Assembly (NCBI RefSeq): GCF_964194025.1
Contig: NC_134472.1
Span: 49,414,001-49,478,000, forward strand
Direction: 5' to 3'
DNA length: 64,000 nt
From: Convolutriloba macropyga
Lineage: Eukaryota
In this document: positions 10,365 to 63,200 of the stretch, piece by piece
Layout of the letters: each line of letters starts with the position of its first letter
How positions within the stretch are numbered: the first letter of the stretch is position 1
Made by a program: the position numbers and the translations under genes
The notes under the pieces: model-generated
What the model saw: only the letters and a program-made list of their open reading frames with translations
The model's database searches: none
What the model was told of the DNA's origin: nothing

Positions 10365-10365
10365 T

Positions 10366-11370: not shown

Positions 11371-11499
11371 CCCGTACTGAACGCCAAGTCAATATCAGTA
11401 CTGGTCAAGTCTAATTCCAAGTCTAGATATCAGTACTGATTCACAGCTATGACCTTAACACATTTAAGAATTGTCAGACTTGGCCTAAATCAGTACGGG
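11371..11499 (+). mobile_element. 129-bp CCC...GGG MITE nested in the BEL leader
   Basis: TIR CCCGTACTGA/TCAGTACGGG, AG TSD. The first ~115 bp match the reverse complement of 21640-21751 (~10 mismatches). Confidence 0.85.
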
Positions 11500-23908: not shown

Positions 23909-25695
23909 TTGTTCCGACCCACATGTGGGGGGAGGAACTATATACTCAAATGAGTTTTTTTCGTTCAGACAATTTTGGCCAATCGATATATTCATCGCAG
24001 AGAGTTGAGACTGATATCATTAAAAAGCTCGTTCAGCGTCGAATATGGAATTATTAAGATTTTTCTGATTTTTGTAATTTACGGGGAGTTATCGAGGTTT
24101 AAACTTTTGAGAAAATTAGAGTGAATTCCATTGATTTTTTTCACATTTCCGGAATTTTTGACAAAAATTTTGCAAATTTTGCTAAATTTTTTAAAAAAAG
24201 TGTTGTTTATTTTATTGTTAAAGACAAAAATAACCGTCGGCTATTTTTATTTAAAGTTGCGTCAAAAATTCGGACTGAATATTTCAAAATTCAGACTTTT
24301 TCATCAAAAACAGCACGAAATAGGTTTCTTTAGTCCACTCTGATTAAATTTGCAGGAAGTACACCCCCAAACACCACTAACACAATCTTCGTAGACTCAA
24401 AATGGGGCTATTTCTACTTCCACTTCCGTTGCGAGTGCTCTGTATTTAAAAGTTTGTCGTTTATTTTGGTAACTTTACTCGTTGATTATCAAAAACGCAG
24501 CATGTATTTTTGTTTCTTTAACAAACAAAATATCTATACCTATCACTTTCGAACAAATAAGTGTTTTTATTGGACGAACAACATTAGCAGAGTTAGTTTT
24601 GCACCAATCTTGGACTGTTACAATCCAAAAAAATTCGGATTGTAATCTGTCGGTTTTTTAATTTAAAAAATCGATCTTTTTTATATATTAATTAAATAAC
24701 AGAACATTTCAACTCAAATTTCACCAGTGATAGGTCAACTCGGTTCCCTATTAGCTCCAAATTATTGTATCTAGTTTATTAATTGAAAGATTACGGTCGT
24801 TTTGACTTTTCAAAACATTTGATTTTTATATAAAAATTGCTTATTGAACTTTGCCTCCACTTTTCTCTTAATTTGGTCAACTTGTAGATTATTGTCAGCA
24901 AAGAAAGAATGCTTCTTCTTTCTACTGAAATAAAATTCAGTCTTTATTACGGTTTTACACCTTAAGTTTTGGTTTTCTGGCTTTGATTCTACTAGATTTC
25001 ACTTTTTTCAGATTTTTGCCCATTTTTCACGTTTTCTAGTTTTGTCACATTATCACGTTATTGACAGTTTGATGTCTATTTGTTCTTCTTTTTGTAACCG
25101 CATAAAAATTGAGTGCCGAAATTTCTTAATTCCGATTTTTGGAAAAACTCGCAGTTGTAAACCTTTGGGATATTTTAGTTGATATCTAATGGTTTTCATT
25201 ACTTTCAATTTAATTGTTTAAAAAAAATACGCAAATTTTTCAAATACACTGCTTTTGTTCTTCATTGTCTAATGGTTAACGAATCTTGTTATGGACAGGT
25301 CCCATATATTTTCTGGTGAATTACAAGTTATTTTGTTTAGTTTCAGTTTTATCTGACGCTATTTTGACTTTGTTATTAAGGTTTGTTTTTTAAAACTGAC
25401 ATAAATTTTTTGATGTAATTACTGCTTGTTGTTGTTTTTGTTTGATTTTATTGTTCGTCTTGACTCGCTTTCTTAATACCGGCTTATCTCATCAGTCTAA
25501 TGTATCTTTTTTCTTACTCCGCTGAGTTATTTGTTTTGGAGGCTATCTTTTCGTTCATACACCAATTTTTTTTTAAATACTTGAAGTTTTGGAGTTTTCT
25601 ATCTCTTTCTCATTTGGTAGCCAATTATGCCAAAATTGTGGATGAGCGGGGTAGAAACCTTATCTGCGATCGCACATTACTGAGCCTCCTTGTTT
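23909..25695 (+). mobile_element. Non-autonomous Helentron/DINE-1-like element (copy A, both ends present)
   Basis: 5' TTGTTCCGACCC..GGGGGGAGGAACTATA stem; 3' GGGGTAGAAAC subTIR, TGCGATCGCA palindrome and CTTGTTT end. Homologous to 48583-50987 (inverted) and 4263-6898. Confidence 0.75.
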
Positions 25696-35191: not shown

Positions 35192-38100
35192 TTTTTCTGC
35201 TTCGGTAAAGTGATGTTCCTATGTAGGCCCTAAAAATTAATTCAGCAAGTATTTGATTAATTGAACAACACTTTTCGTGAAACTGATTATGGATGGTTCT
35301 TAGAGCGCAAAACTAGATAACGTATTCAGAAGTTTTTTTCCTAGACAACCTAGCTAAAGATTTCTTTCTGCTTCAGTAACAAGTAGGAAGGTCAGACTCC
35401 TACGTAGGCCCTGAAAGTAATTTATAAAGTCTTAGACTATATTGAAAAATGCTTTTCGTGAAACTGATTATGGATGGTTCTTAGACCGCAGAACTAGACA
35501 ACGTATTCAGGGTTTTTTTCTAGACAACCTAGAGAAAAATTTTTCTCTCCTTCAGTAAGCAATGAGAGGCTGACACTCCTACGTAGGCAACAAAGATTAT
35601 GTAAAAGTGTTCAACTTGATTGAAAAACACCTTTCATGAAACTGTATATAGATGATTTTTAGACCACAAAACTGGACAATGTATTCAGAACTTTTTCCTA
35701 GACATTCCTAGATCAAAATTGTACTCAGCTTCAATGACTAACTGGAAAGTGACCTTCCTACGTAGGCCCTGAAATTATTTCGGCAATTATTCGACTAATT
35801 AAAAAACACTTTTTGTGGAACTGATATTGGATGGATCTTAGAGCGCAAAACTAGACAACGTACTCAGAGCTTTGTTTCCTAGACATTCCTCGATCAAAAT
35901 TTCATTCAGCTTCAGTGACTAATAGGAAAATGACCCTCCTACGTAGGTCCTGAAATTTATTCAGCAATTTTTTGACTTATTGAAAAACACTTTTCTTGAA
36001 ACTGATTATGGATGGATCTTGGACCGCAAAACTAGACAACGTATTCAGAGCTCTTTTCCTAATCAACCCAGATAAAAATTTTTCTCGCCTTCAGTAAGCA
36101 ATGAGAGGCTGACACTCCTACGTAGGCACCAAAGATTATGTAAAAGTGTTCGACTAGATTGAAAAACTCCTTTCAAGAAACTGTATATAGATGATTTTTA
36201 GACCGCAAAACTTGACAATGTATTCAGAACTTTTTTCCTAGCCATTCCTAGATCAAAATTTCATTTTGCTTCTGTGACTAATAGGAAAGTGACCTTCCTA
36301 CATAGGCCCTAAAATTAATTCAGCAAGTATAAGATTAATTGAAAAACAGATTTCGTGAAACTGATTAAGGATGGTTCCTAGAGCGCAAAATTAGACAACG
36401 TATTCAGAGCATTTTTTCCAGACAACCTAGCTCACAACTTGTTTCTCCTTCAGTAAGCAATGAGAGGTTGACACTCCTGTGTGGGCACCAAAAATGATGT
36501 AAAAGTGTTCGACTAGATTGAAAAACACCTTTCAAGAAACCGTATATAGATTGTTTTTAGACCGCAAACCTTGACAATGTATTCAGAACTTTTTTCCTAG
36601 ACATTCCTAGATCGAAACATTACTCAGCTTCAATGACTAATAGGAAAGTGAACTTCCTACGTAGGCCCTGAAATTAATTCAGCTATTATTCGACTAAATG
36701 AAAAACACTTTTCTTGAAACTGATTAGGGATGGATCTTAGACCGCAAAACTAGACAACGTATTCAGAGCTTTTTTCCTAGACATTCCTAGATCAAAACTT
36801 CATTTAGTTGCAGTGACTAATAGGAAATTGACCCCTCCTACGTAGTCCCTGAAATTAAATCAGCAACTATTTGACTCATTGAAAAACACTTTTCGTGAAA
36901 CTGATTATGGATGGATCTTAGACGGCAAAACTAGACAACGTATTCAGAGCTCTTTTTCTAGACAACCTAGATCAAAACTTCTCTCTCCTTCAGTACGCAA
37001 TGAGAGGGTGAAAATTCTGCGCAGGCAGCAAAAATGATGTAAAAGTTTTCGACTAGATTGAAAAACACCTTTAATGAAACTGTATATAGATGGTTTCTAG
37101 ACCGCAAAACCTGACAATGTATTATGAAATTCTTTTCATAGACATTCCTAGATCAAAACTTCATTCAACTTCAGTGACTAATAGGAAAGTGACCTTCCTA
37201 CGTAGGCCCTGAAATTATTCCAGCAGTTATTCGACTAATTGAAAAACACTTTTTGTGAGACTGATTATGGATGGATCTTAGAGCGCAAAACTAGACAACG
37301 TACTCAGAACTTTGTTTCCTAGACATTCCTAGATCAAAACTTCATTCAGCTTCAGTGACTAATAAAAAAGTGACCTTCCTACGTAGGCCCTGAAATTAAT
37401 TCAGCAATTAATCGACTATTTGAAAAACACTTTTCGTGAGGCTGATTATGGATGGTTCTTAGAGCGCAAAACTAGACAACGTACTCAGAGCTTTGTTTCC
37501 TAGACATTCCTAGATCAAAACTTCATTCAGCTTCAGTGACTAATAGGAAAGTGACCTTCCTACGTAGGCCATTCAGCTTCAGTGACTAATAGGAAAGTGA
37601 CCTTCCTTCGTAGGCCCTGAAACTATTCCAACAGTTATTCGACTAACTGAAAAACACTTTTTGTGAGACTGATTATGGATAGATCTTAGAGCGCAAAACT
37701 AAACAACGTACTCAGAACTTTGTTTCCTAGACATTCCTAGATCAAAACATCATTCAGCTTCAGTGACTAATAAAAAAGTGACCTTCCTACGTAGGCCCTG
37801 AAATTAATTCAGCAATTAATCGACTAATTGAAAAACACTTTTCGTGAAACTGATTATGGATGGATCTTAGACGGCAAAACTAGACAACGTATTCAGAGCT
37901 CTTTTTCTAGACAACCTAGATCAAAACTTCTCTCTCCTTCAGTACGCAATGAGAGGGTGAAAATTCTGCGTAGGCAGCAAAAATGATGTAAAAGTTTTCG
38001 ACTAGATTGAAAAACACCTTTAATGAAACTGTATATAGATGGTTTCTAGACCGCAAAACCTGACAATGTATTATGAAATTCTTTTCATAGACATTCCTAG

Positions 38101-40090
38101 ATCAAAACTTCATTCAACTTCAATGACTAATAGGAAAGTGACCTTCCTACGTAGGCCCTGAAATTAATTCAGCAATTAATCGACTAATTGAAAAACACTT
38201 TTCGTGAGACTGATTATGGATGGTTCTTAGAGCGCAAAACTAGACAACGTACTCAGAGCTTTGTTTCCTAGACATTCCTAGATCAAAACTTCATTCAGCT
38301 TCAGTGACTAATAGGAAATTGACCTTCCTACGTAGGCCCTGAAATTAATTCAGCAATTAATCGACTAATTGAAAAACACTTTTCGTGAGACTGATTATGG
38401 ATGGTTCTTAGAGCGCAAAACTAGACAACGTACTCAGAGCTTTGTTTCCTAGACATTCCTAGATCAAAACTTCATTCAGCTTCAGTGACTAATAGGAAAT
38501 TGACCCCTCCTACGTAGGCCCTGAAATTAAATCAGCAATTATTTGACTCATTGAAAAACACTTTTCGTGAAACTGATTATGGATGGATCTTAGACGGCAA
38601 AACTAGACAACGTATTCAGAGCGCTTTTTCTAGACAACCTAGATCAAAACTTCTCTCTCCTTCAGTTCGCAATGAGAGGGTGAAAATTCTGCGTAGGCAG
38701 CAAAAATGATGTAAAAGTTTTCGACTAGATTGAAAAACACCTTTAATGAAACTGTATATAGATGGTTTCTAGACCGCAAAGCCTGACAATGTATTATGAA
38801 ATTCTTTTCATAGACATTCCTAGATCAAAACTTCATTCAACTTCAATGACTAATAGGAAAGTGACCTTCCTACGTAGGCCATTCAGCTTCAGTGACTAAT
38901 AGGAAAGTGCCCTCCCTACGTAGGCCCTAAAAAATTATTCCAGCAGTTATTCGACTAATTGAAAAACACTTTTCGTGAGACTGATTATGGATGGATCTTA
39001 GAGCGCAAAACTAGACAACGTACTCAGAACTTTGTTTCCTAGACATTCCTAGATCAAAACTTCATTCAGCTTCAGTGACTAATAAAAAAGTGACCTTCCT
39101 ACGTAGGCCCTGAAATTAATTCAGCAATTAATCGACCAATTGAAAAACACTTTTCGTGAGACTGATTATGGATGGTTCTTAGAGCGCAAAACTAGACAAC
39201 GTACTCAGAGCTTTGTTTCCTAGACATTCCTAGATCAAAACTTCATTCAGCTTCAGTGTCTAATAGGAAAGTGACCTTCCTACGTAGGCCATTCAGCTTC
39301 AGTGACTAATAGGAAAGTGACCTTCCTACGTAGGCCCTGAAATTATTCCAGCAGTTATTCGACTAACTGAAAAACACTTTTCGTGAGACTGATTATGGAT
39401 GGATCTTAGAGCGCAAAACTAGACAACGTACTCAGAACTTTGTTTCCTAGACATTCCTAGATCAAAACTTCATTCAGCTTCAGTGACTAATAAAAAGTGA
39501 CCTTCCTACGTAGGCCCTGAAATTAATTCAGCAATTAATCGACTAATTGAAAAACACTTTTCGTGAGACTGATTATGGATGGTTCTTAGAGCGCAAAACT
39601 AGACAACGTACACAGAGCTTTGTTTCCTAGACATTCCTAGATCAAAACTTCATTCAGCTTCAGTGTCTAATAGGAAAGTGACCTTCCTACGTTGGCCATT
39701 CAGCTTCAGTGACTAATAGGAAAGTGACCTTCCTACGTAGGCCCTGAAATTAATTCAGCAGTTATTCGACTAATTGAAAAACACTTTTCGTGAGACTGAT
39801 TATGGGTAGATCTTAGAGCGCAAAACTAGACAACGTACTCAGTGCTTTGTTTCCTAGACATTCATAGATCAAAATTTCATTCAGCTTCAGTGACTAATAG
39901 GAAATTGACCTTCCTACGTAGGCCCTGAAATTAATTCAGTAGTTATTCTACTAATTGAAAAACACTTTTCGTGAGACTGATTCTGGATGGATCTTAGACC
40001 GCAAAACTAGACAACGTATTCAAAGACACCTTTCATGAGACTGTATATACATGGCTTTTAGACCGGAAGACAATGTATTCAAGAACTTTG
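35192..40090. repeat. Satellite array, ~26 monomers of ~180 bp, two monomer types, higher-order structure
   Basis: Core CCTACGTAGG recurs every ~180 bp. B-type monomers (GCAATGAGAGG...GTATATAGAT) at ~35580, 36120, 36480, 37020, 37970 and 38690; 46-bp internal duplications at ~37571, 38881, 39291 and 39698. Confidence 0.97.
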
Positions 40091-40199
40091 TTCTTCAAAA
40101 TTGACTCTAGATTAAATACGCAAATTTCTTATAATAAGGCTTTTCGATAACATATCTGAACAATTTTCAAGGCATGTAAAATTTAACTCAGCTAGATCA

Positions 40200-42240
40200 A
40201 CGGTAAGCACTGCATCAATCATGTTCAAAATGGTCCAAAATATTGATGAGGGGCACGGTATCACGAAAGTCATATCTTAGAGGTTTTTTTTAACAATTTA
40301 AACGACAAAACTTTGTTCTCCGATGTTGCTTTGCATAGGTATCCGAGTTGCTTCAAAAAAACCACTTCGGTTTTCTAATTCAGATCCTCCAAGATTGAGA
40401 TCGATTTTTTCCTCAACACTAAAAAAACGGGCTAAAACTTTAACTTCATCTCTATCCTCAAAGTATTGTGGATTTTCGTTACTCTGCAAAAAAGAGAGGG
40501 AGTCGTGAAGAAAACGAAAAAAGAAAATGAAAACGTTAACGGCAAAAAAATTCGGGAAATCGGAAACTCTGCCCGAATTCTGTTAACGAACGAATTCTCC
40601 TGCAGGTTATAGTTTTGCCACTCATGGTTTTTTTCTCCGCGCTCAAGTTCTCAACAAAATTTTTCAGTACCTCATCCCTTAAATTTGACCTTTGCAATTC
40701 CTTATTCCTTATCTATCTGGTAGAGAAAAAGCCGGCTTATGTTAACTGAGCCAGTAACTGGTCGTATCAGGTGATGGTTGGCTTACTCAAAAGACGTTCC
40801 AGAAATGACTCAAAGTGGTCCAAAATTAGTACATTTCCAACTCAATTGTCGTAGGAGATGAAATTTTATGATCTCAAAAGGTTTCATTGGATACTTTCTG
40901 TTCATACTTTTGCAAAACATTTCCATAGGAATCCCACAGAAATCGGCATGCTTGCTTGTCTCGTACATAGAACGCAGAGCAGAAACAAGTAAATTGAGGT
41001 CTTTTAAGTTAGAATTGGCGTGAGTGTTTGAGTGAACATCTTGAAACACAAGTGGAGCAAAAATTTTGAGCTCGTTAGCTTTGAAAAAACTTCGGTACTT
41101 GAGCGGTCAAACTTTCCAGGCAAATTTCTTTCTTGAAACTTTCTTGGGTCGAACTTTCATGGGTTTCTTGAAACGAGCTAAAGCCTGATCGATATCCGAG
41201 GTTGAATGAAGTAAACGCACAAAAAAGTCAATAACTTCTTTTGCCACACCTATGAGAGTTTGATGCATTGTATCTGTGGGACACGTCAATGTTGGAATTG
41301 TATCTGTGGGACACGTGGTAAATTCTCAAAAAAGATCAGAAGTTTCTAGTATCTTTTCACTCAACGAGTTTCCATCTCATTATCGATGCTTCTTGTTGAT
41401 TTCTTTTGTGGACCTTCCTGTCCGCAACGAAGCGCAACTTGCTTGTTTTCAATAGGACTTCCCATTTCAATACTTCATGATGCGGGTAGGAGTGCGACCC
41501 CAACCTATGTAGGCCTCTCATGTAGCACAATGGACAGCCATATTAGCCGTTGCAGTGCTTCTGTTTAAGCACTTCTGCCGTGCAGATTAGGTCTGTTATC
41601 AACATTTTCGTGATAAATTCAACTTCAAAACAATGTGGTTGATACTCTGCTGTTAACGGCTTGCAAATTTCATTATTGTAATGGTCGGAAACTGTGTTCC
41701 AGCGCGTATCCTTATTTCCGTACCAAAGTGTGCATAACAAAATATTTCTGAAAGATGAGCGAAGGAGTGGAGGAAGATCTGCAATCGCAACCACACAGGG
41801 TAGGCTGACCGGCTGCTTGACTTTCTGACGTTAGCACCATCAGTATCAAGAATCAGTCGTATGCGCAGCTTTTCGCCATCACAAAGAGTTTTATTCTGAT
41901 ATCTATACGGGTTCTAGCTTCTACACGAGAATATTGAAATATTGAATATATAATTAATATGACTATTTCCGCTAAGAACTCCGCAAAAACTAAAAGAATA
42001 AGTTGGCCTCCTTCAAGATATTTACTTTCGCTTAAGTACATTTCATTGCATTTTGAAATCTCGGACATGACAAGATTCGGACTCGGGTAGAAAAAAGGCG
42101 TGATTGAGAGCTTCCTATCTCGTAAGCGTGTCGTTTAGCAAGTCATCAGAACCGGCATGGACAAAAACTGCTGAAATTTGGGATAGCATTGCATTCTGAA
42201 CTCTGACAATTCCGTTTAACATTTCAGTACCAATATCAAA
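40200..42240 (-). pseudogene. EnSpm/CACTA (CMC)-type DDE transposase, decayed
   Basis: Manual translation across lesions: LDTDGANVRKSSSRSAYPVW.AIADLPPLLR...NILLCTLWYG; ITDLICTAEVLKQKHCNG*YGCPLC; DTMHQTLIGVAK; FKANELK; FHLLRQL...FGPL*VISGTSFE*ANHHL...VTGS. These follow the typical animal EnSpm motif order. Confidence 0.88.
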
Positions 42241-42699
42241 AGACAAACTTCAGCGTGAAACAGCTGGCGAAGTTGACTGCTCGCATAGAAAACTTAGTAA
42301 ATTTGACCTATCAGAGCACCTGCGATAAGCACACACTTCTGAGCTTGAACAATCAGTTAGTGCAGAAAACTCTTGCAGAGTCTCTACTCTTGGCGTTTCT
42401 AAACTTTCAAGCGAATCAAGAGCCTGGTCAATAAACGATTGCATGATCTTCGTGCTAAGACAGGTAGAAGAAGCAGTTAATTCCAATTGTCTCTTTCGCT
42501 GAATAGCAGATGTTCTTGTCTTGCTGCCAGTGCTTGTGCTTGAGCCAGACAAAATCGGGTTGCCAACGGGTGTTTCAGTGATATCAAGGGAAAGACGCGA
42601 AGTATGTGAGTTCAAAGGCGTATTAATATGGCTATCAGTGAGAACTTCTGGGATGCCGTCTACAATCTGCGGGCTCTCTTCGTGTTCGGAATCACCGTG

Positions 42700-43324
42700 A
42701 AACTCGGATCCACCGTGAAAATCTCTATCATTAATTCCAAAGAATGATTCACCATAGCTAACCGTTATCTCCTCCACCAGATATGACGATCGAACTTCTT
42801 GCAGTCTCACGCATGGATATGGTAACTCCCAGCTGATGCCTTGGTGATACCTTGCAATTGGTGAGCACGAATGGTTTACAAAAATAACCGTTCCAAGTAG
42901 CACTTTCTCGGAATCGAACAAAATTCCCTTCATTATAGACAGACTGCATATTTCCAGGAATATTGTCAACTATTCCTAAAGGAAACGAGAAAGGATTAAT
43001 TCGAAGTTTAATAAGTTTTGCAGTTTGATTGAAAAGTCCGAAGACACTAAAGTTGTCCGGTAAAAATTCAAACCCACTCTCTATAGTTTCACGATAAAGT
43101 TTGTCAAAGGATAAGTACGTCTTGTTCAATTTTCGGTGACGGTTACTGGTGCGCCTTTGATCGAAAAGCTCTTCACAAGGCAATAATATCATTGAAACTG
43201 GCTTTCTTTCAAAGTTATTAAGAGACTTTTTTGCAACGAGCGCGTCACATAACATTAAATCTTTGCAAACAATCATATCATCTAAACTCTCAACAGACAA
43301 TGAAAATAACCAGTCAGAATACAT
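42700..43324 (-). pseudogene. SET-domain protein, SUV4-20/KMT5B-C/Set9-like (H4K20 methyltransferase family), frameshifted
   Basis: KDLMLCD; SGFEFLP (cf. SGFEILP); LSIM...VLLGTVIFVNHSCSP (cf. FSVM...LWLGPAAFINHDCRP); EEITVSYGESFFGIN (cf. EEISCYYGDGFFGEN). Split over ORFs 42758..43324 and 42250..42969; post-SET cysteines absent. Confidence 0.85.
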
Positions 43325-43464
43325 GAATCAAATTATGCTAATCACCCGTGTTTTTGGAAGTTTGCTGAGAAACTAACTGAACAAATCAACAACTTTCTAC
43401 AAATGGTCACTTAATTTCCAACTGATTTACGAAAAGGAAGGAAGTCACTTTTCTAAAATTCTCA

Positions 43465-43900
43465 ACGAAAATATTCCTAAACCAATATTGGCTAAAATTC
43501 ATTCAACAAATTTCCCGGAGAATTTATTTGATCCGACGAGACTCACCTACGAGTGCCTTCTGACCAAATAATTTTAAGACACATCTGGTAGATTTAGACC
43601 AATGTCATTTTCTATAAAAAACTACTTCAGAGAATTAGAAAACTATTTAGAGTTCTGAGATACTGATTGACCGGCCGAGCCTCATATACAAATGGCTTTT
43701 GCTACTGTTTTTTCAAGCTGATCTGCGAGAATAAAATCAGTCACTTTTAAATGTTCTCTGCGAATATATTCCTAAAGAAGGTATTGGCTAAAATTTATTC
43801 AACAAAGTTCTCGGAGAAATAGTTTTATCATGAGCCTCATCTACCAGTGCGTTCTGATCAAGTGATTTTGGCGGCGATGGATCTTGAGCAATGTCATTTA
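43465..43900. repeat. Degenerate repeat block, same family as 46960-47460
   Basis: ATTCCTAAA..TATTGGCTAAAATT.ATTCAACAAA...CGGAGAA...GAGCCTCACCTACGAGTGCC.TCTGA units. Confidence 0.8.
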
Positions 43901-43992
43901 TCAGAGTTTATTAGAAAGAAACAGTAGTAATCAAGAGTAAACTGGTTAATCACTTGACTGATCAACATACTAGAGACTGGAATTTCTCTCAA

Positions 43993-45005
43993 TTATACAA
44001 TATAAACCTGATCTTCATACTCGTCAGTTTCACAATGAGAGTTTTGATAATCGGATTCGAGAGAATGAGAGCCCAAATTGTCCAAGGCTAATTTGTGTGA
44101 ACCTTTTGTTGAGTCACGCATCATCTGATTGCGGGATCTTCTGCAAGTTTCGTACGAAAAAGAAGGGTTATGAGGGTATTTTGATTTTACAAACCAGTTT
44201 AAATTTTCCCTCAGTTTCAGCATCCAAAGAAGACCTTAAGCTCAATTTGATCGACACCCTTTTGGAGACAGCATCATTCTTGCTGCAAAATTTTTTTCTC
44301 AATGAGTTTATCACCGAGGTCTCGTCCAAAACCAGCAGCATCCATACCTGCGTAGATTTTCATCAAATCAAAGTTATTATGCATAACAGACACCGCTTCT
44401 TTCGACAATTCTGGATAATCATCAATGTTTTGGAAACCCCAATTTTCAGAGATTAAGAGCTTCTCTCTTAGCATTTCCTCTTCTTTGGAAATTGAGGACA
44501 AAAAAAATTTTCTTTTCATCTGCTCTTTCTTTTTTTTCAAAAAGCACTTAGCATCAGATCCACTGTTTTCTCGTGTTCCGCCAAATACTCGTCAAAACTT
44601 TTACAAACGGGAGAGCAAGACTGCTGGGCCAAACTGAGAGACTGATCTTCTTTTTCACCTGCTCCGTCGAAGTGCATCGGACATACAACATTTGAGTTGC
44701 GAATAGAAGAATCAGCACTTCTATTCTCACCGGGCTCAATGATCGAATCCGCGGTTTTCGTTTGAGCCTGAAAGGTTTTCACTTTCTCGAATCGTCATCG
44801 GTTTTTTCGAACCAATCACAGTAATATCTAGTTCAGAACAGTCGACTCCTTTATCAACAGGTTCCAAGTACTTCGCTTCAACAACCTTGAGATCTTTTTG
44901 GTGTCCCTTGCAGCGCAGTCGAGCTCTGAAATTGAACCCTGAAAACATCAAATCATTACAACTGTCATCCGGCAGGGTATACTTTTGCCAATAATCTGTT
45001 TTCAA
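43993..45005 (-). pseudogene. Protein with C-terminal BEN-like domain, frameshifted
   Basis: Four consecutive minus-strand ORFs. Reconstructed C-terminus AGFGRDLGDKLIEKKI...MLSPKG...RSSLDAELRENLNWFVKSKYP...SYETCRRSRNQMMRD fits the BEN pattern (F..L...LF; R..LD; terminal N...RD). Confidence 0.65.
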
Positions 45006-45608
45006 TCATGCCTCACTGTTTGTTTTGAGGGTGAATACAGATAGATAATCGCAAAAAATCCACTTGACCTTTCGAGCTCCGCTGTGACGGCAAATTGTCT
45101 TTGTCAGCTGCACAAAATCCTTATCCTAAATTTGTTTGCGACATTGATTTCGTCTTAACTTTCGTTTTGCTTACGCTCAGCGTATAGGATTTATTTTCAC
45201 TGAACTCATGGTGCAACTGAAAAAACAAGCAAAATGACGCTCTTGTCACATTCTTGCAAAATCATTGGCACAATCATAAACAGTACTTTAAAACACACCA
45301 GACCAGGCAATCATGAGATTCTAGATCACGAATCTGATGCAGGATAGCAATTGCAAATAATAAATAGGCTAAAATTTTGCTATCAACTACGAAAATAAAA
45401 ACCAAATTAATAACGAATTGCTTTCAAACATGTCATTTCTTGTACTTCAAAATGAGCTCAACTGTTTGAGAGCCAAAACAAAAGAAACCCAAATCAAACG
45501 AAAAAGAAACAAACAACCGTTAAAATGTCATCTAAAGTAAAAAAAAAAGTCAAGCTGACTAGTTTGAAAACAATTTGGAAACGTTCAAAAAAGTAACTAT
45601 AGTTCATG

Positions 45609-45860
45609 AAACAAATCCTTTCTACAAATCTATTTCACTGAATGCCTCATATCAATTTAGTACTAGAAGCAAAGAGCATGTATCAATTAATTAAAAAATA
45701 AGCGTATATGGACCGAAACAAAATCTTTCTATTGAGATATTTCATTTGATTGCTCATATCAATATAGCACTAGAACCAAGGAACATGTATCAAGTAATAA
45801 AAAAAGCATATGGAGCGAAATAAATTCTTTCTACAAAACCATTTCACTGAATTGCTCATT
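45609..45860. repeat. Short tandem repeat, ~2.3 copies of ~107 bp
   Basis: CTTTCTA...ATTTCA.TGA.TG.TCATATCAAT.TAG.ACTAGAA.CAA...CATGTATCAA repeated. Confidence 0.75.
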
Positions 45861-46959
45861 CCAATATATCGGACTAAGCGTTAATCTAACTGGCTTCATG
45901 TGACGTACTAGCACTTGACTGGTCAAAGTTATTTTGTTTCTTCTTGCTGTTATGTTTCCTATCAATACCTGCCTTGTTGGCTGCTCTTTTTGCTTCACTA
46001 TAAGCATTTGGGAATTTGAGTGGATTGAACAGACGACAAACATTTGCTAAAAAAAACTCAGCTTAGATATCACTTGAACAATTAAATTGAAGAATGAGAA
46101 AAAATAACCTTTGAAATTTTGGGCATCTAAATTAACCGGACTTCTTTGCAACTATTGCTGTTTTCAGGCCAAAATCATCTCATCAGACAGTGCATCTTTG
46201 CCAAAAAAATTTAACACGAAGAATTTGACCAGCTTTTTTTTGTGTCTGACGTAACAATTTCGTAAATTTCAGTTTCACTTTTTTCAGGGGAATCAGAGGG
46301 GACATCCCTGGTAGAAAAATCAGCTGTTGGTTTGTTCAAAGTCAACGAGAACGAGCTGAATAAATACATTAGACAAATCAAGGATATTTTGAATCAAAGA
46401 TGTAACATACCGCAGCTCTGATTTGCTTCACCTCAAGTCTGGAATTTACTAATTGGACTGCTTACAACAATTATTTTACTCAACCGTAGATTTTTAAAAT
46501 TGTCTTTTGCGTTCAATAGGAACTTCTAGCCCGATCTCTGTGTTCGACGGCAAAAAGAATTTGAACCTATTTCAGCTTAAAAATTCAATTGTACTACATA
46601 TACAAAAAACTTCAATGTTATTACCTGGCAACCTAATAGCTGGCTTTGAGTAACGTTAGCATTTACTGCGCTTGTTGAATTTTCCGCTTGTTGCGATGTG
46701 CTTTCCTATAACAAAGACCAGTTAAAAACAGGAAAAGATCAAAAAAAGGGGAAAATCAGCCAACCATGTTTGCCTTTTTTTCATTCATCCCTTTCTTTTT
46801 TCTCTGGTCGTTTCCCTCAAGTATCTATGGTAAGTTTTAAAGCAATAGGAACAAAGAAAAATTGTATTACGTCAATTTAATACAATTTAAATGAATAAAT
46901 TTACATAATTCAATAAATTCAAACTCAATTATGAGAATGAAAGCAGTCATTTGTCTAAT

Positions 46960-47460
46960 TTCTTTACGAACAAGTTCCTAAAGAAGGTATTGGCCAATAT
47001 TCACAAAACAAATTTCTCGGAGAAATTATTTGATACGAAGAGCCTTACCTAGCAGTGCCTTCTGACCAAATAATTTTGGGCTTATTGGGAAAATTGGGAG
47101 CAATCTCTTTTATTAGATGTTCTCTTAGCAAATTTCTCGGAGAAAATAATTGATCCGAAGAGCCTCACCTACGAGTGCCTTCTGAACAAATAATTTTGTG
47201 CGCATCGGGAGGATTTGGAGCATTGTCTTTTATTAGATGTATTTTTAACAACGTTCTCGGAGAAAATATTTGATCAGAAGAGCCTCACCGACGAGTGCTT
47301 TCTGACTAGATAATTTTGGACATATCTGCTTGATTTAGTGCAATTTCATTTATTAGAAATTCTCAATAAAATTGCTTTTTCAGATTGAATTAGAAAAAAA
47401 ATCTTGGTAGTTCTGAGAAATTGACTGAACCGACGAGCCTCACCTACGAATAACTTTCAG
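46960..47460. repeat. Tandem repeat of 120-bp units (~3.5 copies)
   Basis: TTCTCGGAGAAA..TTGAT..GAAGAGCCTCACCTACGAGTGCCTTCTGA at ~47040, 47160 and 47280; partial at 47435. Confidence 0.85.
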
Positions 47461-47725
47461 TCATGTCATTTGAATCGTTTTAGCGTAAACGTGAATCTGA
47501 TATATACTAAGAGACTAAAACTACTTGTGGTTCACTTCAAGACAGTTAACTAGTTTACTTTTAGTTAAGTATTGACAATTGATGACAACGTTAAGTAACG
47601 AAATTGATGACAACAACGTTAAGTAATGGCAATTGATGACAACTTTAAGTAATGACAATTGATTCGAATAGCATTCAAACAAACATAGCCGGGAATTTGC
47701 CGGAAAATAGCCCCCGATAACTCAC

Positions 47726-48572
47726 TTACATGAACTTTCGCAAAAGGTCCGCATCAACAACTTCTTGCATTGATCTCGGATCATCTTTGATATCATTGAG
47801 CCAGTAACCGATAGTTTTATAACTATCGTCTGTGAGATGAACACTTTCGCTGAGCTAATCCAGATTAAACCCCAATTCAATAAGATGAGGCTTAAACCGC
47901 AACAAGAGAAGATCATTAAATTGGTTGAGCCATTTTCGTGTTTCCGGGAACGAGTTACGAGGGATAACTTGATGCAAATGAAACTTTTCTCTTTGAAGTT
48001 AAGATATATCCTAAAAGCTCTTAAGAATTCTTTGGCTTAGCCAATTGTCCTTAAGGGGTCGTCTTCTGGTTTTCTCGGGTGTCTTTTTATATCGTTGCCA
48101 GCCAACATAACAATAACATTACTCGCGCAAATAACCTCACTTTTCATGCGTTTTAAAAAGTCCAATTTGGCCCCGGAACTCCCATTGCATTGATTTCCGC
48201 TCAGAAGCGGAAAAAGTCTTTCAGTTGCTTCAAATGCGAATCACCCACTATGAGAATTTTGTTGAGCGGTGGGGTTGGCGAATGAATTCTTCGTAGGGTC
48301 AACTTCTTTTTCTCGCCAGATCCACGACGCAATGATGATCCGCTAACTGCTAGACTTCCTGCACGGCTTGTGCTTCTGAACCCGCTCGAAACATAGACGT
48401 TTGTTTTTGAGAATGGCTCTGGTTTCCAGGCAGCAAAATCTCTGGTGGGAACCACCCACTTCAAGTCGGAATCACCCACTAAGCAAACTTTGTTTAGCGG
48501 TGTGGTTGTAGCTGTTGGCGAGGGAATTCTTTTAAGGGTCAACTTCTTTTGCTCGGCAGATCCACGAAACAT
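47726..48572 (-). pseudogene. SGNH/GDSL hydrolase-like protein, decayed
   Basis: Block I ILIVGDSHLK (duplicated as VCLVGDSDLK), block II SSGAKL, block III VIV.LAGNDI, then VIPR and block V ESVHLTDDSYKTIG. Needs several frameshifts and read-through of stops. Confidence 0.75.
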
Positions 48573-48582
48573 TGATCAAAGC

Positions 48583-50987
48583 AAAATCAAACAACAAAGC
48601 AAATATTAATTACATCAAAAAGTATATGTTCGTTGTAAAAAACAAAACCTAATAACAAAGTCAACATAGCGTCAGAAAAAATCGAAACTAACTAAAGTAA
48701 CTGGCAATTTATCAGAAAAGATATCAGACCAGTCTTTAATAAGGCTTGGTAACAATTAGACAAGAAAGAACAAAAACAGTAAATTTAAAAAATTTGCTTA
48801 GTTTATTTTGCAAACAATTAATTTCAAAGTAATGAACACCAATAGAAATCAGCTAAAATATCCCATAGATCTACGATTACCAATGCTTCTATAGAAAAGG
48901 ACATTAAGACCTGTCCTTATTCAATTTTTTATTCGGTTAAAAAAGAACAACAAAAAGACAAAAAAAAAACAAAAATTCAATTAAAACTTGCCAATAAACA
49001 AACAACGTGGAGGCCGTAAAGTCATATTTCAGCCCTAAGAATGTGATAGATTGCGCCTTCTTTAAACACAGATACTGTTTTATGTGAGTTTTCAATAATG
49101 AGCTAGGTAACAAGTTGACAAAAGAGAAAATAGAGCAAAATTAGGTATTATTTTTTGTATTTTCTAGAAATAAAATTACTTCCAAACTCACGAAAACCAT
49201 CAATTACAAAAAATATAATTAAATAGGCTCGGGTATTCTTTCAAAGCAAGCCCATGAGACCTGCAATTATCCAGAATATATCTTATGTCTACGAAAAGAA
49301 CTTCAAATAAAACAAAAACAAAAATCAAAAATTAGTTTTTTTCTTTTGAAAAAACAGTGTCGAAGCCAGTAAAGTCATAACGAATTCATTAAAAGCATTG
49401 GATTTTCTGACACCATTCCCTTTTGACACATTCCCTTGACACCAGTTGTGTCATATTTGACCTGGAATTAACAAGGCTAGGTAAAAAGTACACAATAAAA
49501 AGAACAAAATTGCGAATTTAAAATGAGTTTTTTATTCTGGAAAACAATTGTTTTCAAAGTCATGGAAGCCATCAGCGATCTACTAACATCAGAATATCGG
49601 CTCATCTATTCTATCATGAGAAGTTGAAGAAACCTGCCTTTATACAGGCAATTTCATACGACTAAAGCGACAAAGTAAAACGACAGTTAAAGAAAAAATT
49701 AAAAAATTCAATTAAAATCTTCAAGAAAGTAATGTAGAGGCCGGTAAAACCATAATCTACATCTTTCGGCAATTTAATATGATCAATTGTGCGTTATATT
49801 AAACTCCAATAATGTGATATGTGAACTGTATATAATGTAATAATGTGACAAAACTAGAAAACTAAAAATGTGCAAATCTAAAAAAATAAATAAAAATGTG
49901 AAATCTAGTAGTATCAGAGCCAGAAAACCATAACTTAAGGCGTAAAACAGCGATAGAGATTAAATACATTCTAATTCAAAAGAAATAAAAAGCATCCTTT
50001 CTTTGCTGACACTAAGCTACAAGTTAACCAAACTATGACAAAAAATAGAGGTGGAGTTCAATAAGCCATTATATATTTAAAAATCAATTTTTTTTTAAAA
50101 GTCAAAACGACCAAAAGCTTTCGAGTAAGAAACTAGACGCATTAGTTTGGATTTCCTTAGGAAATCAATTGGATCTCTCTTTACTGAACTTTGATTTGAT
50201 ATATTCTGTTCTTTAATTAATATGAACAGATCATTCTTTTAAAAAAACGAACGACTGATTACAATCCGAATTCTGTTTGGATTGTAACAATCCAAGATTG
50301 GTCAAAAACTGGCCCTGCTAATGCTAATCGTCTATTAGGAACACTTAATATTATAGATAAAGTTAATATGTTACATAAAAAATCAAAAATGAATGCTGCG
50401 TTTTTGACACTCCATGAGTATAGTTAGCAAAAAACGACAAAGTTTTAATTACAGAGAACTCCCAACGGAAGTTGAATTAGGAATAGCCCCCTTTTGAGTC
50501 TCGAAAAATTGTATTAGTGGCGATTGGGGGTGCACTTCCTGCAACTTTAATGAAAGTGAAAAAAGTGAGCTTTTTTCGTGCTGTTTTTGATGAAAAAGGC
50601 TGACTTTTGAAATATTGAGCAAGAATTTTTGACAAAAAATTTTTAAACTGGTCGACAATTTTTTTTTGTCTTTAAAAATAATAAAATAAACAACACTGTT
50701 CTTCTAAACTTCAACAATTTTTAGCAAAACTGACGAAATTTTAGGAAAAATTCCGGAAATTGTGAATAAAAACAACGGAATTCACTCTACTTTTCTCGGA
50801 AGTTTAATCTCAATAACTCCCTGTAAAAAACGAAAAAAAAATTGAATTCCATATTCTACGCTGGACGAGCTTTCTAATGATACCAGTCTCAACTGTCAAC
50901 GATTAGTATATCGATCGGAGAAAATGGTGTGAGCAAAAAACCAATTTGAGTATATAGTTCCTCCCCCCTCAACAGGGGTCGGAACAA
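48583..50987 (-). mobile_element. Helentron/DINE-1-like copy C, lacking its 3' ~250 bp, with internal ~365-bp diverged repeats
   Basis: Colinear inverted homology to 23909-25450; terminal TATAGTTCCTCCCCCCTCAACAGGGGTCGGAACAA. Confidence 0.75.
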
Positions 50988-50999
50988 TTAAGCGACCAA

Positions 51000-52620
51000 G
51001 AAGCCGTGTATGTTATTAGTAAAAGATTATATGACCTATGTATTATTACTATTTTTTGTTAATTACCGGTAGGGATTCCTTAAGGATGAAGATCCTAAAT
51101 GACTTGGTGCATTTAATTGAATAATGCTCCACAGAAATATCCTGATACGTTGATAGGCCAGTCCTCTACTTTTGAAAAAAAAGAGTCTGGGGTGGTCATT
51201 ATTGGTTTTACATACACCATTGAGCCTCCTGTTAAAAGTAAAGCCCGGGTCGAGAAAAAATTGGAAAAATATGTGAGATAAGCGGTGAAATTTCAATTTT
51301 TAGCGATGAAATGTGGTGAACGCGGTAAAATTATGTAAGTTCACCGCTTACTCTAGTGGTGAAATTACATAAGTTAATCGCTTAAAAAAGTTTCAAAAAA
51401 GATGTTTGTGGGTAAAATTTCCGCGCATCTTTTAATAAATGTATCTTAACTTTGTTGAACAAAAGACAATTCGAAGCGTTTTCTAAGCGGTGAATTTATG
51501 TAATTTCACCACTAAGTTAAGCGGTGAATTGATGTAATTTCATTGCATACATCGCTTATCTTACATAATCAGGAATTTTTTCAAACCGGTAATTTTATGT
51601 GATTTCACCGCTTGATTTCATCGCTAAATTCAGCTGTGAAATTATGTATTTTCACCGCTTCCAGGCGATAAATGTTTTTCACCACATTCACCGCCTGATT
51701 TATATAATTTCACCGCATTCAACGCTTATCTTACACAATTTTTCGCATCCAGCGCTTATCTTATATAATTTTGAGTTGAATGGAGGTGACACCTCGACCC
51801 GGGAGCTGTATGTTTTCCATGGATGCGGCATCGTGTCTCTTTAGCTTTTTTTTGAAGGGTACGGTCTCCTCATATCTCATTTTGGTAGCAGACAATCTTT
51901 TCATGCTTTCTGTGGGATGAGAGAGCATCAACTTGTACTATGAAAGTGCTATTATCCACAAAGCAAGGCTAAATCAGCGTTGCAACTGGCCAATCCAACT
52001 TAACGGATAAAGGTTTGGTTGCAAACGACAGAAGAAATTTTTAAAAGTTTTTTTCAGGAGAGCGGGTTGTCTCAATTTGAAGTTTCCCTTAGTGTTCAGA
52101 GGGACTGCGTGTACTTTAGTACTTCCCACAATAATTTCATTATCCATGATCAGTTACTTTCTAGTAATTCCTAATTCCAATTTTCCTTTTTATGAGACAA
52201 AACCCCGGTTCTTTTTGTTAGAGATGGGTCAAAATGGAACCACTTGAAAAAATAAAACCAATGACTACTACCTTACATGAATATGAAAACGTTGAAAGTG
52301 TACGTAATTTTTTTTCGCTCAAGCTTAACATCTTTGGTCGAACTAAAATCAAGGATCAAATTTTGATTGTGCTAACATCGAGCAGCAAACTTGTGCCGAA
52401 GAAAAGCTCAGCGGCAGAACTTGGGTCGTGCTAAAATCCAGCTGTAAAGTAAAATATTGCATCGATCCAAAATCGAGAGCGTCTAAATTAAAGCTACAAA
52501 TCTTTTTATGTGTTATTGGGGGCGAGCAAGAGGCCTTTTCATGCCAGCTTTGGTCGAGCATCGTCGTTTTTCAAAAGTCTATACCTGAACAAGGGAAGCG
52601 TAGTTACTAATATGCTGCAT
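51000..52620 (-). pseudogene. Heavily decayed LINE RT/C-terminal remnant, interrupted by the MITE (duplicated at ~52960-54560)
   Basis: Only weak motifs: LQLDFS (DFSKAFD-like), GGTTCCATTTTGACCCA (GSILGP-like), LLTGGSMVY (ILLYGSxVW-like). Confidence 0.35.
51244..51803. mobile_element. CCC...GGG MITE related to 690-1259
   Basis: TIR CCCGGGTCGAG/CTCGACCCGGG, AG TSD, many GCGGTGAA/TTCACCGC motifs. Confidence 0.88.
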
Positions 52621-53200
52621 ATGCTGTGATCAACACATTACAAAAAAAATAAATTAAGTAAAAGACGTGAAGTTATAACAACGTGAAAATTTTAGGAAAA
52701 ACTCCGGAAAATGTGAATAAAAACAACGGAATTCACTCTACTTTTCTCGGAAGTTTAATCTCAATAACTCCCCGTAAAAAAACGAAAATAAAAAAAAAAT
52801 GAATTCCATATTCTCCGCTGGACGAGCTTTCTAATGATACCAGTCTCAACTCTCAACGATTAGTATATCGATCGGCGAAAATGGTCGGAGCAAAAAACCC
52901 ATTTGAGTATATAGTTCCTCCCCCCTCAACAGGGGTCGGAACAATTAAGCGACCAAGAAGCCATGTATGTTATTAGTAAAAGATTATATGACCTATGTAT
53001 GATTATTATTTTTTGTTAATTACCGGGAGGGATTCCTTAAGGATGAAGATCCTAAATGACTTGGTGCATTTAATTGAATAATGCTCCACAGAAATATCCT
53101 GATACGTTGATAGTCTAGTCCTCTACTTGTGAATAAAAAGAGTCTGGGGTGGTCATTTTTGGTTTTACATACACCATTGAGCCTACTGTTAAAAGTAAAG

Positions 53201-53748
53201 CCCGGGTCGAGAAAAAATTGGAAAAATATGTAAGTTAAGCGGTGAAATTACAAATTTTAGCGATGAAATGTGGTGAACGCGGTAAAATTATGTAAGTTCA
53301 CCGCTTACTCTAGTGGTGAAATTACATAAGTTAATCGCTTAAAAAAGTTTCAAAAAAGATGTTTGTGGGTAAAATTTCCACGCATCTTGTAATAAATGTA
53401 TCTTAACTTTGTTGAACAAAAGACAATTCGAAGCGTTTTCTAAGCGGTGAATTTATGTAATTTCACCACTAAGTTAAGCGGTGAATTGATGTAATTTCAT
53501 TGCATTCACCGCTTATCTTACATAATCAGGACTTTTATTCAAACCGGTAAATTTATGTGATTACACCGCTAAATTCAGCTGTGAAATTATGTATTTTCAC
53601 CGCTTCCAGGCGATAAAGGTTTTTCATCGCATTCACCGCCTGATTTATATAATTTCACCGCATTCAACGCTTATCTTACACAATTTTTCGCATCCAGCGC
53701 TTACCTTATATAATTTTGAGTTGAATGGCGGTGACACCTCGACCCGGG
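53201..53748. mobile_element. Second copy of the same MITE, produced by the tandem duplication
   Basis: Same TIR, same AG TSD and same flanks as 51244-51803. Confidence 0.88.
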
Positions 53749-54653
53749 AGCTAAATGTTTTCCATGGATGCGGCATCGTGTCTCTTTAGCATGTTTTTGA
53801 AGGGTACGGTCTCCTCATACCTCATTTTGGTAGCAGACAATCTTTTCATGCTTTTTGTGGGATGAGAGAGCATCAACTTGTACTATGAAAGTGCTATTAT
53901 CCATAAAGCAAGGCTAAATCAGCGTTGCAACTGGCCAATCCAACTTAACGGATAAAGGTTTGCTTGCAAACGACAGAAGAAGTTTTTTTCAGGAGAACGG
54001 GTTGTCTCAATTTGAAATTTCCCTTAGTGTTCAGAGGGACTGCGTGTACTTTAGTACTTCCCACAATAATTTCATTATCCATGATCAGTTACTTTTTAGT
54101 AATTCGTAATTCCATTTTTCCCTTTAATGAGACAAAACCCCGGTTCATTTTGTTAGAGATGGGTCAAAATGGAACCACTTGAAGAAATAAAACCAATGCC
54201 TACTACCTTACATGAATATGAAAACGTTGAAAGTGTACGTAATTTTTTTTCGCTCAAGCTTGACATCTTTGGTCGTACTAAAATCAAGGATCAAATTTTG
54301 ATTGAGCTAACATCGAGCAGCAAACTTGTGCCGAAGAAAAACTCAGCGGCAGAACTTGGGTCGTGCTAAAATCCAGCTGTAAAGTAAAATATTGCGTCGA
54401 TCCAAAATCGAGAGCGTCTAAATTAAAGCTACAAATCTTTTTATGTGTTATTGAGGGCGAGCAAGAGGCCTTTTCATGCCAGCTTTGGTCGAGCATCGTC
54501 GTTTATAAGAAGTCTATACCTGAACAAGGGAAGTGTAGTTACTCATATGCTTCATATGCTGTGATCAACACATTACAAAAAATAATAAATTAAGTAAAAG
54601 ACGTGAAGTTATAACAATTAGTATAATTGCTAGGTGGGAATATGCGCTGTATA

Positions 54654-55469: not shown

Positions 55470-56477
55470 TAATAACTTATTGGGTTTGAAATTGGAGCCG
55501 CTGGAAAAAAATTGTTGTGGTTTGATGGCATGGCTGATCTTCGATGAGACAAATGGATAATAGTTAATGAGCTTCTGCTATGTTTTTCTGTGGTTGTGTT
55601 TTTATGTGTTCGATCCAGAGGCACCATTTCGCAATGTATTTCCACTTTAGTCCAGTCTTCTGTGGTTTTTACCTTTACAAGGAAAAATGTCCGTCTGAAA
55701 CGATCAATTAATTACCTTTCGATAGCAGATGTTTACCAGGTTTCTTTGGAAACGGACAAAAAATTTCGATAAATATTCTGAAAAAAAAAATGAAATGAAT
55801 GATTAAGCTAAATTTTGTGTTTCAATTAACCAAATAGTATACAAAATAAAAGAAAAATTCCTATCAGTAATATCTTTTGGCAGTAAAGATCTTCCTTAGT
55901 TAGACTGCTTACTATAATCACTTAAAATGTAAATTTTGTTTTCTTTGTCTGATTCATGATACAGAACTGATTCCGTTTTAAATCACCGTTGAAACGTATC
56001 GTGGAACAGTCAGTGAAGAACAAAACATATCCATTGAAAACAAGACACAACTGAGATCAAACTTCGACAATAATACCAAAAATAAAAAAATTCTATAAAT
56101 TTCATTGTATTTTCTACATAAATTTAATTTTGCTTCCACTTAAGAACAAGTAGAAACAGCAACTAAAATTGAAGTGAACAACTGAGCTGAATTTTTTATT
56201 GTATATATATAAGTGTTTTGATCATATGATCCAAAAACATGTAGAGCAGCAAACAAGCAATCCAGGAAGAGAATATTGTTTATTTGGGATTAACGATTTC
56301 GTAGAAGAACTGCCTAGCAAAGAATTTATAGTTGCATACAGTATTTATACAGCATGCAGAATATACAGTAACATTATCTTAAAATCGGATGCTTAGATGA
56401 TCAACTGTAATTTGAAAAATGCTTTAAGAATCGGTATTTGTCTCAACGAATGTTTCCAACATTAGTCTCTTCATTCA

Positions 56478-56961
56478 TGTCATACGGTATGGATAAATCA
56501 TCATATATCCATAACTGTTTTTAGTTCAGTTTTACCCATTTGAAGGACAAGTGCTTGTGTTATTTAGTTTAGTTTCAGTTCATTCAAATCTTCATCACTT
56601 CTTGTCTGTTCATTCTGTCTGTGCAGGAAATTGTCTGTTCAACTTCTAAACAATTCTTGCAGTTCCTTCCTGTCTTGTGATTATGTTATGAACAAAACTT
56701 TCAATTTCTAAATTGTACTTATTTTAATCATCGTCTCATTTGCATGCTGAAAATCAGTTCTAATTTAAATCTAGAAATCCGCTTTTCAATTGAACTCAGT
56801 TGAATAGAATAGTGGCAATCGAGCCGCGATTGACTAAGTTGACAATTAGAAAATCTAATTGTAATCAGTGAATTGCCATTTGTGACGCAACTGCCGAAAC
56901 TGATTTGGACTAAAAGCATCCGCAACTCGATTGGAACAATTTGTCGTACTTGGGTATAGCA
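56478..56961 (+). repeat. Gypsy 5' LTR
   Basis: TGTCATACGG...GGGTATAGCA; direct repeat of 63201-63686. Confidence 0.93.
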
Positions 56962-58080: not shown

Positions 58081-58137
58081 CAGCAATTATACGATCAAGT
58101 ATACGATTCAAACTATGAGAGTGACTCTGACGACTAC

Positions 58138-63069: not shown

Positions 63070-63200
63070 AAACTCATTGAATTTTTATGAACTCTTTATA
63101 TTTTAAATATTATCTAATATTTTATTATTTATGTAATCGGTGAATGGTTGTTAATTTTCTGATTTTATATACTAATTTTCTTTTTCCCAACAAGGGGAAA

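Follow-up and report, generated by a model that had tools for sequence, protein, structure and literature searches.

A dead SET-transposase fusion gene, very probably of a CMC/EnSpm transposon, in Convolutriloba macropyga

SETMAR (Metnase) of anthropoid primates is a protein in which an N-terminal SET domain precedes a DDE-type transposase at the C-terminus. It is a single-copy domesticated host gene with a captured Hsmar1 mariner transposase, and its SET domain is of another class than the one described here and is credited with dimethylation of H3K36 (H3K36me2). A remnant of a gene with the same order of parts was analyzed in a window of 64,000 nt of the Convolutriloba macropyga genome (GCF_964194025.1, NC_134472.1, 49,414,001-49,478,000); all feature positions given below count within this window. 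In contrast to SETMAR, the family represented by this locus consists of a multi-copy element transposase with dead copies, its SET module is SUV4-20/KMT5B-C-like and its transposase belongs with Transposase_21/DUF1258 and not with mariner. Very probably, the locus is a dead copy of the gene for the transposase of a large CMC/EnSpm (Transposase_21) element, a cut-and-paste transposon with several genes, and the fusion of SET and transposase is real.

Other mobile elements also carry an enzyme or reader of chromatin or epigenetic marks. KDZ and other fungal DNA transposons possess TET/JBP dioxygenases and chromoviruses possess chromodomain integrases, but the enzyme or reader (oxidation of 5-methylcytosine, usually from a separate gene, and reading of H3K9 methylation, respectively) and the element classes differ from those of the present family. 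HarbingerS and MuDR transposons of Phytophthora are likewise DNA transposons with SET histone methyltransferase genes (Kojima and Jurka, Repbase Reports 2014, cited in PMC12730594). According to the citing description, on which this comparison is based, they belong to the PIF/Harbinger and Mutator superfamilies of oomycete hosts, and the SET 'genes are incorporated'. The same two Pfam domains, SET and Transposase_21, are present together in one gene model of Ptychodera flava with the transposable element class CACTA;CMC;EnSpm, given as one row in Supplementary Table 6 of Grau-Bove et al. 2022. This multi-exon model is placed in the orthogroup 'like:KMT5A' with partial expression, and its table row gives no element, fold, motif-conservation or selection analysis. 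It probably represents the same family as the window fusion. Full-text literature searches found no main-text description of a SET-Transposase_21 fusion. The earlier note on this DNA had not been aware of any description of the combination, which is not quite right, as the Ptychodera flava row and the SET-bearing transposons of Phytophthora, in other superfamilies, limit the novelty.

The window is eukaryotic and rich in repeats, with a G+C content of ~35%. The SET motifs were found on the minus strand in two overlapping open reading frames (ORFs), 42758-43324 (188 aa) and 42250-42969 (239 aa), and the transposase motifs in shorter ORFs downstream. Domain assignment required intact relatives because the window pieces alone are weak. 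Pfam detected SET in them only below threshold (E 0.065) and found no match in the transposase pieces, while the window ORF alone identified SUV420H2 as the best among PDB sequences with an E of only 0.026. The 239-aa ORF was used as query against 1.84 billion representatives in an exhaustive HMMER search, which gave 12 relatives, including P0002 (754 aa, E 2.8e-25), P0006 (551 aa) and P0010 (995 aa). All these three show an N-terminal SET domain in Pfam and then Transposase_21/DUF1258 matches in the same chain. P0010 is encoded by a single unbroken ORF of 2988 nt on a contig of the NCBI assembly GCA_013332895.1 and P0013 (1116 aa) by a single ORF of 3351 nt. P0016 (982 aa) also combines an N-terminal SET with a C-terminal DDE transposase of the Transposase_21/DUF1258 type in a single ORF, and it aligns end to end with P0010, which comes from a separate source, at 36% identity. 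On the contig L002, P0002 is followed by a frameshift and then by a 297-aa ORF which completes the transposase.

A word-indexed search returned few relatives with whole P0010 and no further ones with alignment A3, which comprises 15 relatives. A query restricted to the transposase half of P0010 was productive and added the SET-bearing full-length proteins P0016, P0019, P0020, P0022, P0023, P0024 and P0025, as well as relatives with PF02992 and without SET in ants, a wasp and a rotifer. Some proteins of this search each stand for more than 100 near-identical sequences, in clusters with 113 and 101 members. SET and transposase are in the same chain in 10 of the 15 relatives of A3, and the other five are N-terminally short ORFs. 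Pairwise comparison of these relatives gave mean identities of 35% for the SET core, 18% for the linker and 40% for the DDE core. At least four diverged copies of the fusion (L002, L004, L005 and L006) occur in one assembly. Thus SET and transposase do co-occur at other loci, and the suggestion that both parts once formed one polypeptide is borne out by unbroken SET-transposase ORFs in many diverged relatives. The intact relatives encode a single polypeptide of ~980-1120 aa, composed of a SUV4-20/KMT5B-C-like module, a Ser/Thr-rich linker and a DDE transposase.

The window copy was compared with these proteins by tblastn and by a frameshift-aware dynamic programming alignment with P0002 and the L002 ORF 11466-12359 as references. 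With intact P0002, tblastn gave four colinear high-scoring segment pairs (E 1.7e-41, 1.3e-34, 3e-21 and 2.4e-18), and the colinear pairs of the relatives reach from 43276 to ~40546. In the frameshift-aware alignment, residues 1-751 of P0002 match window positions 43276-41059 with 332/711 identical residues, 6 frameshifts and 6 in-frame stops, and residues 1-217 of the L002 ORF match 41064-40415 with 107/213 identical residues, 4 frameshifts and 3 in-frame stops. The window copy is also colinear with P0010. The remnant starts at a probable ATG (43276-43274) and its low end is at ~40415. The N-domain shares 39% of its residues with P0002, SET 43%, the linker 36% and the transposase 54%. The parts of the remnant are as follows (x, any residue; asterisk, stop).

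40415..43276, minus strand: SET-transposase fusion pseudogene, whole coding remnant (frameshift-aware alignment to P0002, L002:11466-12359 and P0010; tblastn)
43079..43276, minus strand: N-terminal helical domain of the SUV4-20-like module (MIVCKDLMLCDALV...), P0002 residues 1-64, 25/64 identical
42697..43078, minus strand: SET core and post-SET remnant, from the alignments; NHSC kept, GxG degraded, post-SET Cys lost, frameshift at 42925
43078-43028, minus strand: degraded GxG region SGFEFLPDNFSVFGLFN, GGFG changed to SVFG
42888-42856, minus strand: NHSC motif, VIFVNHSCSPI, intact
from 42774, minus strand: EEITVSYGESFFG, EEITVSYG intact
42211..42696, minus strand: Ser/Thr-rich linker with a stop at 42250-42252 and two conserved short motifs
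42534-42475, minus strand: basic motif of the linker, STGSKTRTSAIQRKRQLEL, STGS and a K/R-rich run with QRK(R)
42447-42421, minus strand: linker motif IMQSFIDQA, of the pattern (I/L)xxSFIxQ common to P0001-P0004
41059..42210, minus strand: transposase N-region and DDE core, from the alignments; catalytic columns invariant in A3
41853-41827, minus strand: D1, ILDTDGANV
41782-41750, minus strand: ADLPPLLRSSF
41605-41576, minus strand: D2, MLITDLICTA
41551-41513, minus strand: NG*YGCPLC, stop at 41543-41545
41283-41236, minus strand: DxMH, CPTDTMHQTLIGVAKE
41088-41059, minus strand: catalytic E, FKANEL
40415..41064, minus strand: C-terminal transposase region, FGPL*VISGTSFE*ANHHL..., from the alignment with L002:11466-12359; GPL*..FE* near 40810-40785

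The SET, linker and transposase motifs quoted in the earlier note were thus found by translation and alignment on the minus strand where it had placed them. It had also seen no obvious non-coding gap between the two parts; there is none, because the stretch between SET and transposase aligns with the linker of the single-ORF relatives. The agreement of motifs and alignments is far beyond chance, and the locus is one gene, with SET, then linker, then transposase, no intergenic gap, and dead. A KMT5 retro-pseudogene lying by accident beside an EnSpm fragment of other origin would fit the decayed state of the locus and nothing else. The window is colinear through SET, linker and transposase with single-ORF proteins and the same arrangement is present in at least 10 diverged relatives, and on these two grounds this explanation, which is hardly credible, was rejected. 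No second copy of the fusion gene was found within the 64-kb window.

Decay of the window copy amounts to ~10 frameshifts and 9 in-frame stops. Against P0002, the frameshifts are at 42925, 42099, 41881, 41789, 41460 and 41305 and the stops at 42250-42252, 42115, 41543-41545, 41361, 41346 and 41107. Against the L002 ORF, the C-terminal part shows stops at 40810, 40783 and 40536 and frameshifts at 40713, 40645, 40545 and 40505. The C-terminal ~80-125 residues are decayed or absent, and the similarity stops after 40415, just short of a satellite array. Both parts had been described as similarly decayed. Both are indeed frameshifted, but the SET part shows one frameshift (42925) and no stop while the linker, transposase and C-terminal part together show ~9 frameshifts and 9 stops, so that the description applies only approximately; the counts involved are low (Poisson P ~0.08). 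With its frameshifts and stops, degraded GxG and lost post-SET Cys, the window copy is incapable of the activity proposed below for its relatives.

The SET class was analyzed with alignment A1, which contains the N-terminal ~220 residues of ten relatives and two window pieces. The A1 profile matched SUV420H2/KMT5B among all PDB sequences at E 2e-25 to 4e-24 (89-93 bits), while the next SET class, H3K36 and MLL-type, followed at E 1.3e-9 (41 bits). An AlphaFold2 model of P0010:1-240 was built on A1 (mean predicted local distance difference test score, pLDDT, 79) and compared with PDB by Foldseek. The top 15 matches of this model were all SUV4-20H1/H2 with template modelling (TM) scores of 0.53-0.63; the scores were 0.60-0.63 where ~237 columns align and 0.53-0.56 for four shorter alignments. 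Other SET structures reached 0.34-0.39 over a core of ~130 residues. A helical N-terminal domain, SET and a zinc-binding post-SET define SUV4-20, and the N-domain is unique to that family (PMC10697951). Helices 21-82 of the model superpose on the SUV4-20 N-domain, and the match over ~237 columns therefore covers this helical domain. By profile and by predicted fold, the N-terminal part of the family is SUV4-20/KMT5B-C-like, in agreement with the class which had been named from the motifs.

The host enzymes SUV4-20H1/H2 (KMT5B/C) are H4K20 di- and tri-methyltransferases with the same N-domain, SET and zinc post-SET, and they are the best match of the family by profile and fold. The identity between them is only 20-25%, however, and the fourth post-SET ligand in the family is often His, not Cys, its zinc motif being CxCxxC (as in KMT5B/C) or CxCx(5-6)H. 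Moreover, the C-terminal domain with the Arg anchors for the nucleosome acidic patch is not recognisable, and the module is multi-copy and fused to a transposase. Of the 10 relatives with SET, 7 retain NHxC and 9 the catalytic Tyr (ExxxxY), and most retain G(G/S)(F/Y)G. A basic QRKR motif is present ~70 aa past the post-SET in the window, P0001 and P0002, where no C-terminal domain can be aligned to the SUV420H1 anchors (Y349/R352/R357). The QRK(R) run of the linker is shared by the window, P0001 and P0002, and P0003 and P0004 possess basic runs in the same region. Such a run could be a nuclear localisation signal or an anchor on the nucleosome acidic patch.

In alignment A3 (P0010 numbering), D463, E703, C565, C568, D644, M646 and H647 do not vary and D546 is found in 14 of the 15 relatives; this pattern is that of a DDE triad with CxxC and DxMH motifs. 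The catalytic residues conserved in A3 (DDE and DxMH) are also present in the window copy. P0014, a relative without SET, matches Transposase_21 (PF02992) at 39.9 bits against a cut-off of 28.6, and P0010 matches P0014 at E 9.5e-18. DUF1258 is found in P0013 at 34 bits (cut-off 33.1), and the precomputed domains of P0022 comprise PF02992, PF06869 and PF00856 together. Neighbours in the ESM Atlas, taken as a lead only, were Transposase_21/DUF1258 clusters of arthropods, rotifers and nematodes, followed by Plavaka. On account of the DDE, CxxC and DxMH residues, these domain matches and the Atlas neighbours, the enzyme is filed in the CMC/EnSpm (Transposase_21) group, and the profile searches in this way lead to the same EnSpm/CACTA class as had been proposed for the window.

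Selection was estimated from two relatives of one assembly with ~90% nucleotide identity, L005 (encoding P0020) and L006 (encoding P0005). The ratio of non-synonymous to synonymous substitution rates (dN/dS) was calculated by the Nei-Gojobori method with bootstrap 95% intervals.

SET module, L005 vs L006: dN/dS 0.36 (0.19-0.67)
Linker, L005 vs L006: dN/dS 0.33 (0.20-0.55)
Transposase, L005 vs L006: dN/dS 0.41 (0.28-0.63)

The SET module is under purifying selection equal to that of the transposase. The order of SET first and transposase second, as in SETMAR, might also suggest a domesticated host gene of the SETMAR type, in which a KMT5 gene of the host captured a transposase. This was rejected as very improbable: near-identical sequences occur in clusters of 113 and 101, one assembly contains at least four diverged copies (named above), dead copies with frameshifts exist, the DDE triad is intact in 15 of 15 relatives, and a repeat-rich element, with inverted arms and shared accessory genes, surrounds the gene. 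The parts of this element in the window are listed below.

23909..25451, plus strand: left inverted arm, candidate element end (self-BLAST; outer part in common with L002:1-251)
48575..50987, minus strand: right inverted arm, candidate element end, with an insertion of ~860 bp at 48960-49824
48052..48572, minus strand: SGNH/GDSL-like accessory gene remnant, also placed at 48398-48052 (tblastn of L001:11668-12333)
43993..46053, minus strand: accessory ORF remnants upstream of the fusion gene (tblastn of L002 ORFs, order as in L002)
46053-45937, minus strand: match to L002 ORF 6096-6338 (tblastn)
45164-44826, minus strand: match to L002 ORF 6676-7374 (tblastn)
44435-44289, minus strand: match to L002 ORF 7997-8296 (tblastn)
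35207..40022, no strand: 181-bp satellite array, next to the transposase remnant on its downstream side (Tandem Repeats Finder)

Short inverted-repeat scans of the window gave no terminal repeats, and the arms emerged from self-BLAST, which paired 23909-25069 with 50987-49824 (77%, 1197 bp) and 25073-25451 with 48960-48575 (78%). The arms are ~1.5 kb, and their outer part is found again where contig L002 begins (5' end), about as far from the gene there. The 27 kb from 23909 to 50987 are the probable element. An isolated copy of ~320 bp of the outer arm end, 67-68% identical and in right-end orientation, is located at 6582-6901; it could be either a fragment or a different element's end. A tandem duplication at 50736-54617, with a unit of ~1950 bp (50736-52681 and 52687-54617, 95% identical), takes in the outer ~250 bp of the right arm together with its outside flank.

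L004, which comes from the same ENA assembly as L002, is colinear with window positions 35207-48567 at 80-86% nucleotide identity, with the same satellite in the same position. Satellites in L004 were recorded at 12662-14264, 97-1015 and 2129-2517. At the position corresponding to the window satellite, L002 possesses satellites of 173-175 bp (16080-18082) and a 3-kb (GTAT)n. In three related elements, the fusion gene is thus followed immediately by a satellite of nucleosome-like length (181 bp in the window, 173-175 bp in L002). Further arrays, with repeat units of ~120 bp and ~107 bp, were found on the upstream side of the fusion gene and among the accessory ORFs, at 43412-43905, 46914-47357 and 45608-45868; the ~120-bp unit recurs at both of its places in the window and in L004.

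No Pfam family was found in the accessory ORFs. A BEN-domain label for them is not endorsed, as Pfam found none in them or in their relatives. L001:11668-12333 matches Lipase_GDSL_2 at E 7.5e-5, which is under the curated cut-off. In L001, the accessory homologues including this GDSL-like ORF (9100-12333) share the strand of the fusion gene and are placed downstream of it, whereas in L002 (5926-8296) and the window (44289-48398) the accessory genes are upstream. Lineages of the element thus differ in the order of their genes.

Several observations weigh against the interpretation given here. In the SET-bearing proteins scanned, Transposase_21 reaches 15.8-20.9 bits, below the cut-off of 28.6. 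The candidate ends of the inverted arms, which read 5'-TTGTTCCGACCC... and terminate ...GGGTCGGAACAA, lack a CACTA/CACNG start; this bears on the element ends and not on the class of the transposase, because the arms are unproven as true termini. With the ends set at ...GGAACAA, the flanks are TTG on the left and TTA on the right, giving no clean duplication, and the arms are 23% diverged. The window copy and its nearest relative L004 show a dN/dS of 1.29 over 143 codons of a codon alignment. Their divergence is the neutral decay of dead copies, and the window copy itself therefore shows no sign of function. In P0013, P0019 and P0025, the His of NHxC is replaced by Ser, giving NS(D/S)C in place of NHSC, while the SET fold region is kept, and P0013 also has His in place of the catalytic Tyr. 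These three may be catalytically dead variants. As the SET domain is retained despite such losses, catalysis is not universally required.

A purely binding role is therefore a serious rival for the SET module. As a non-catalytic tether, it would bind the H4 tail or the nucleosome and steer insertion like the chromodomains of chromoviral integrases, with no mark written. Retention of the domain in the three Ser lineages and in P0013 agrees with such a role, as do the extensive contacts of SUV420H1 with the nucleosome through the H4 tail, DNA and acidic patch (PMC10697951). But the wide conservation of NHSC (7/10 lineages), the ExxxxY Tyr (9/10), GxG and the Cys/His post-SET exceeds the need of pure binding, and the tether is considered rather unlikely. 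The module might instead methylate a non-histone substrate, either the transposase itself or a host repair factor. Metnase/SETMAR is described as regulated by automethylation (PMC2566874), and the linker contains conserved Lys/Arg-rich motifs which would suit such a substrate. The full SUV4-20 architecture is kept, however, including the N-domain which frames the H4 peptide, and a non-histone target appears quite improbable.

The proposed mechanism is that the SET module of active copies docks the transposase on nucleosomes via the H4 tail and would most likely methylate H4K20. The methylation would label the chromatin of the element itself or of the sites where it is excised and inserted; alternatively, the module would select chromatin for insertion. 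H4K20 writing as the catalytic step is held tentatively, with slightly less than even confidence, from what is established for SUV4-20 enzymes (PMC10697951). In the host pathway H4K20me2 recruits 53BP1 and ORC1 (PMC10697951). A wider proposal, in which an active H4K20 writer, the nucleosome-length satellites and accessory DNA-binding proteins form a self-contained chromatin module, either for 53BP1-dependent repair of excision breaks via H4K20me2 or for H4K20me3 heterochromatin over the element, is improbable.

Two other elements were observed in the window. A young BEL/Pao long terminal repeat (LTR) retrotransposon is located at 9928-20013, with LTRs of 438 bp (9928-10365 and 19576-20013) which are 99.1% identical. 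It possesses an intact gag-like ORF of 785 aa (DUF1759) and a pol ORF of 1345 aa (Peptidase_A17, RVT_1 and rve), and its G+C content is ~46% against 35% around it. A Gypsy-type element is found at 56477-63686, with reverse transcriptase/RNase H ORFs at 58138-60012 and 60216-61193 and direct repeats at 56477-56961 and 63200-63686, 92.6% identical and probably LTRs.

The window copy is an ordinary dead transposon gene which has value only as a witness of its family, and the interest lies at the level of the family. If the interpretation is true, the family represents an animal cut-and-paste transposase with a built-in SUV4-20-type H4 methyltransferase module kept by selection, a natural counterpart of SETMAR which arose inside an active element and not by domestication. 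If H4K20 writing is also true, it would be a transposon writing its own histone mark. Given the recruitment of 53BP1 and ORC1 by H4K20me2 (PMC10697951), the fusion therefore provides a directly testable connection of transposition with break repair and with chromatin marking, and it is a natural scaffold for chromatin-aware transposases.

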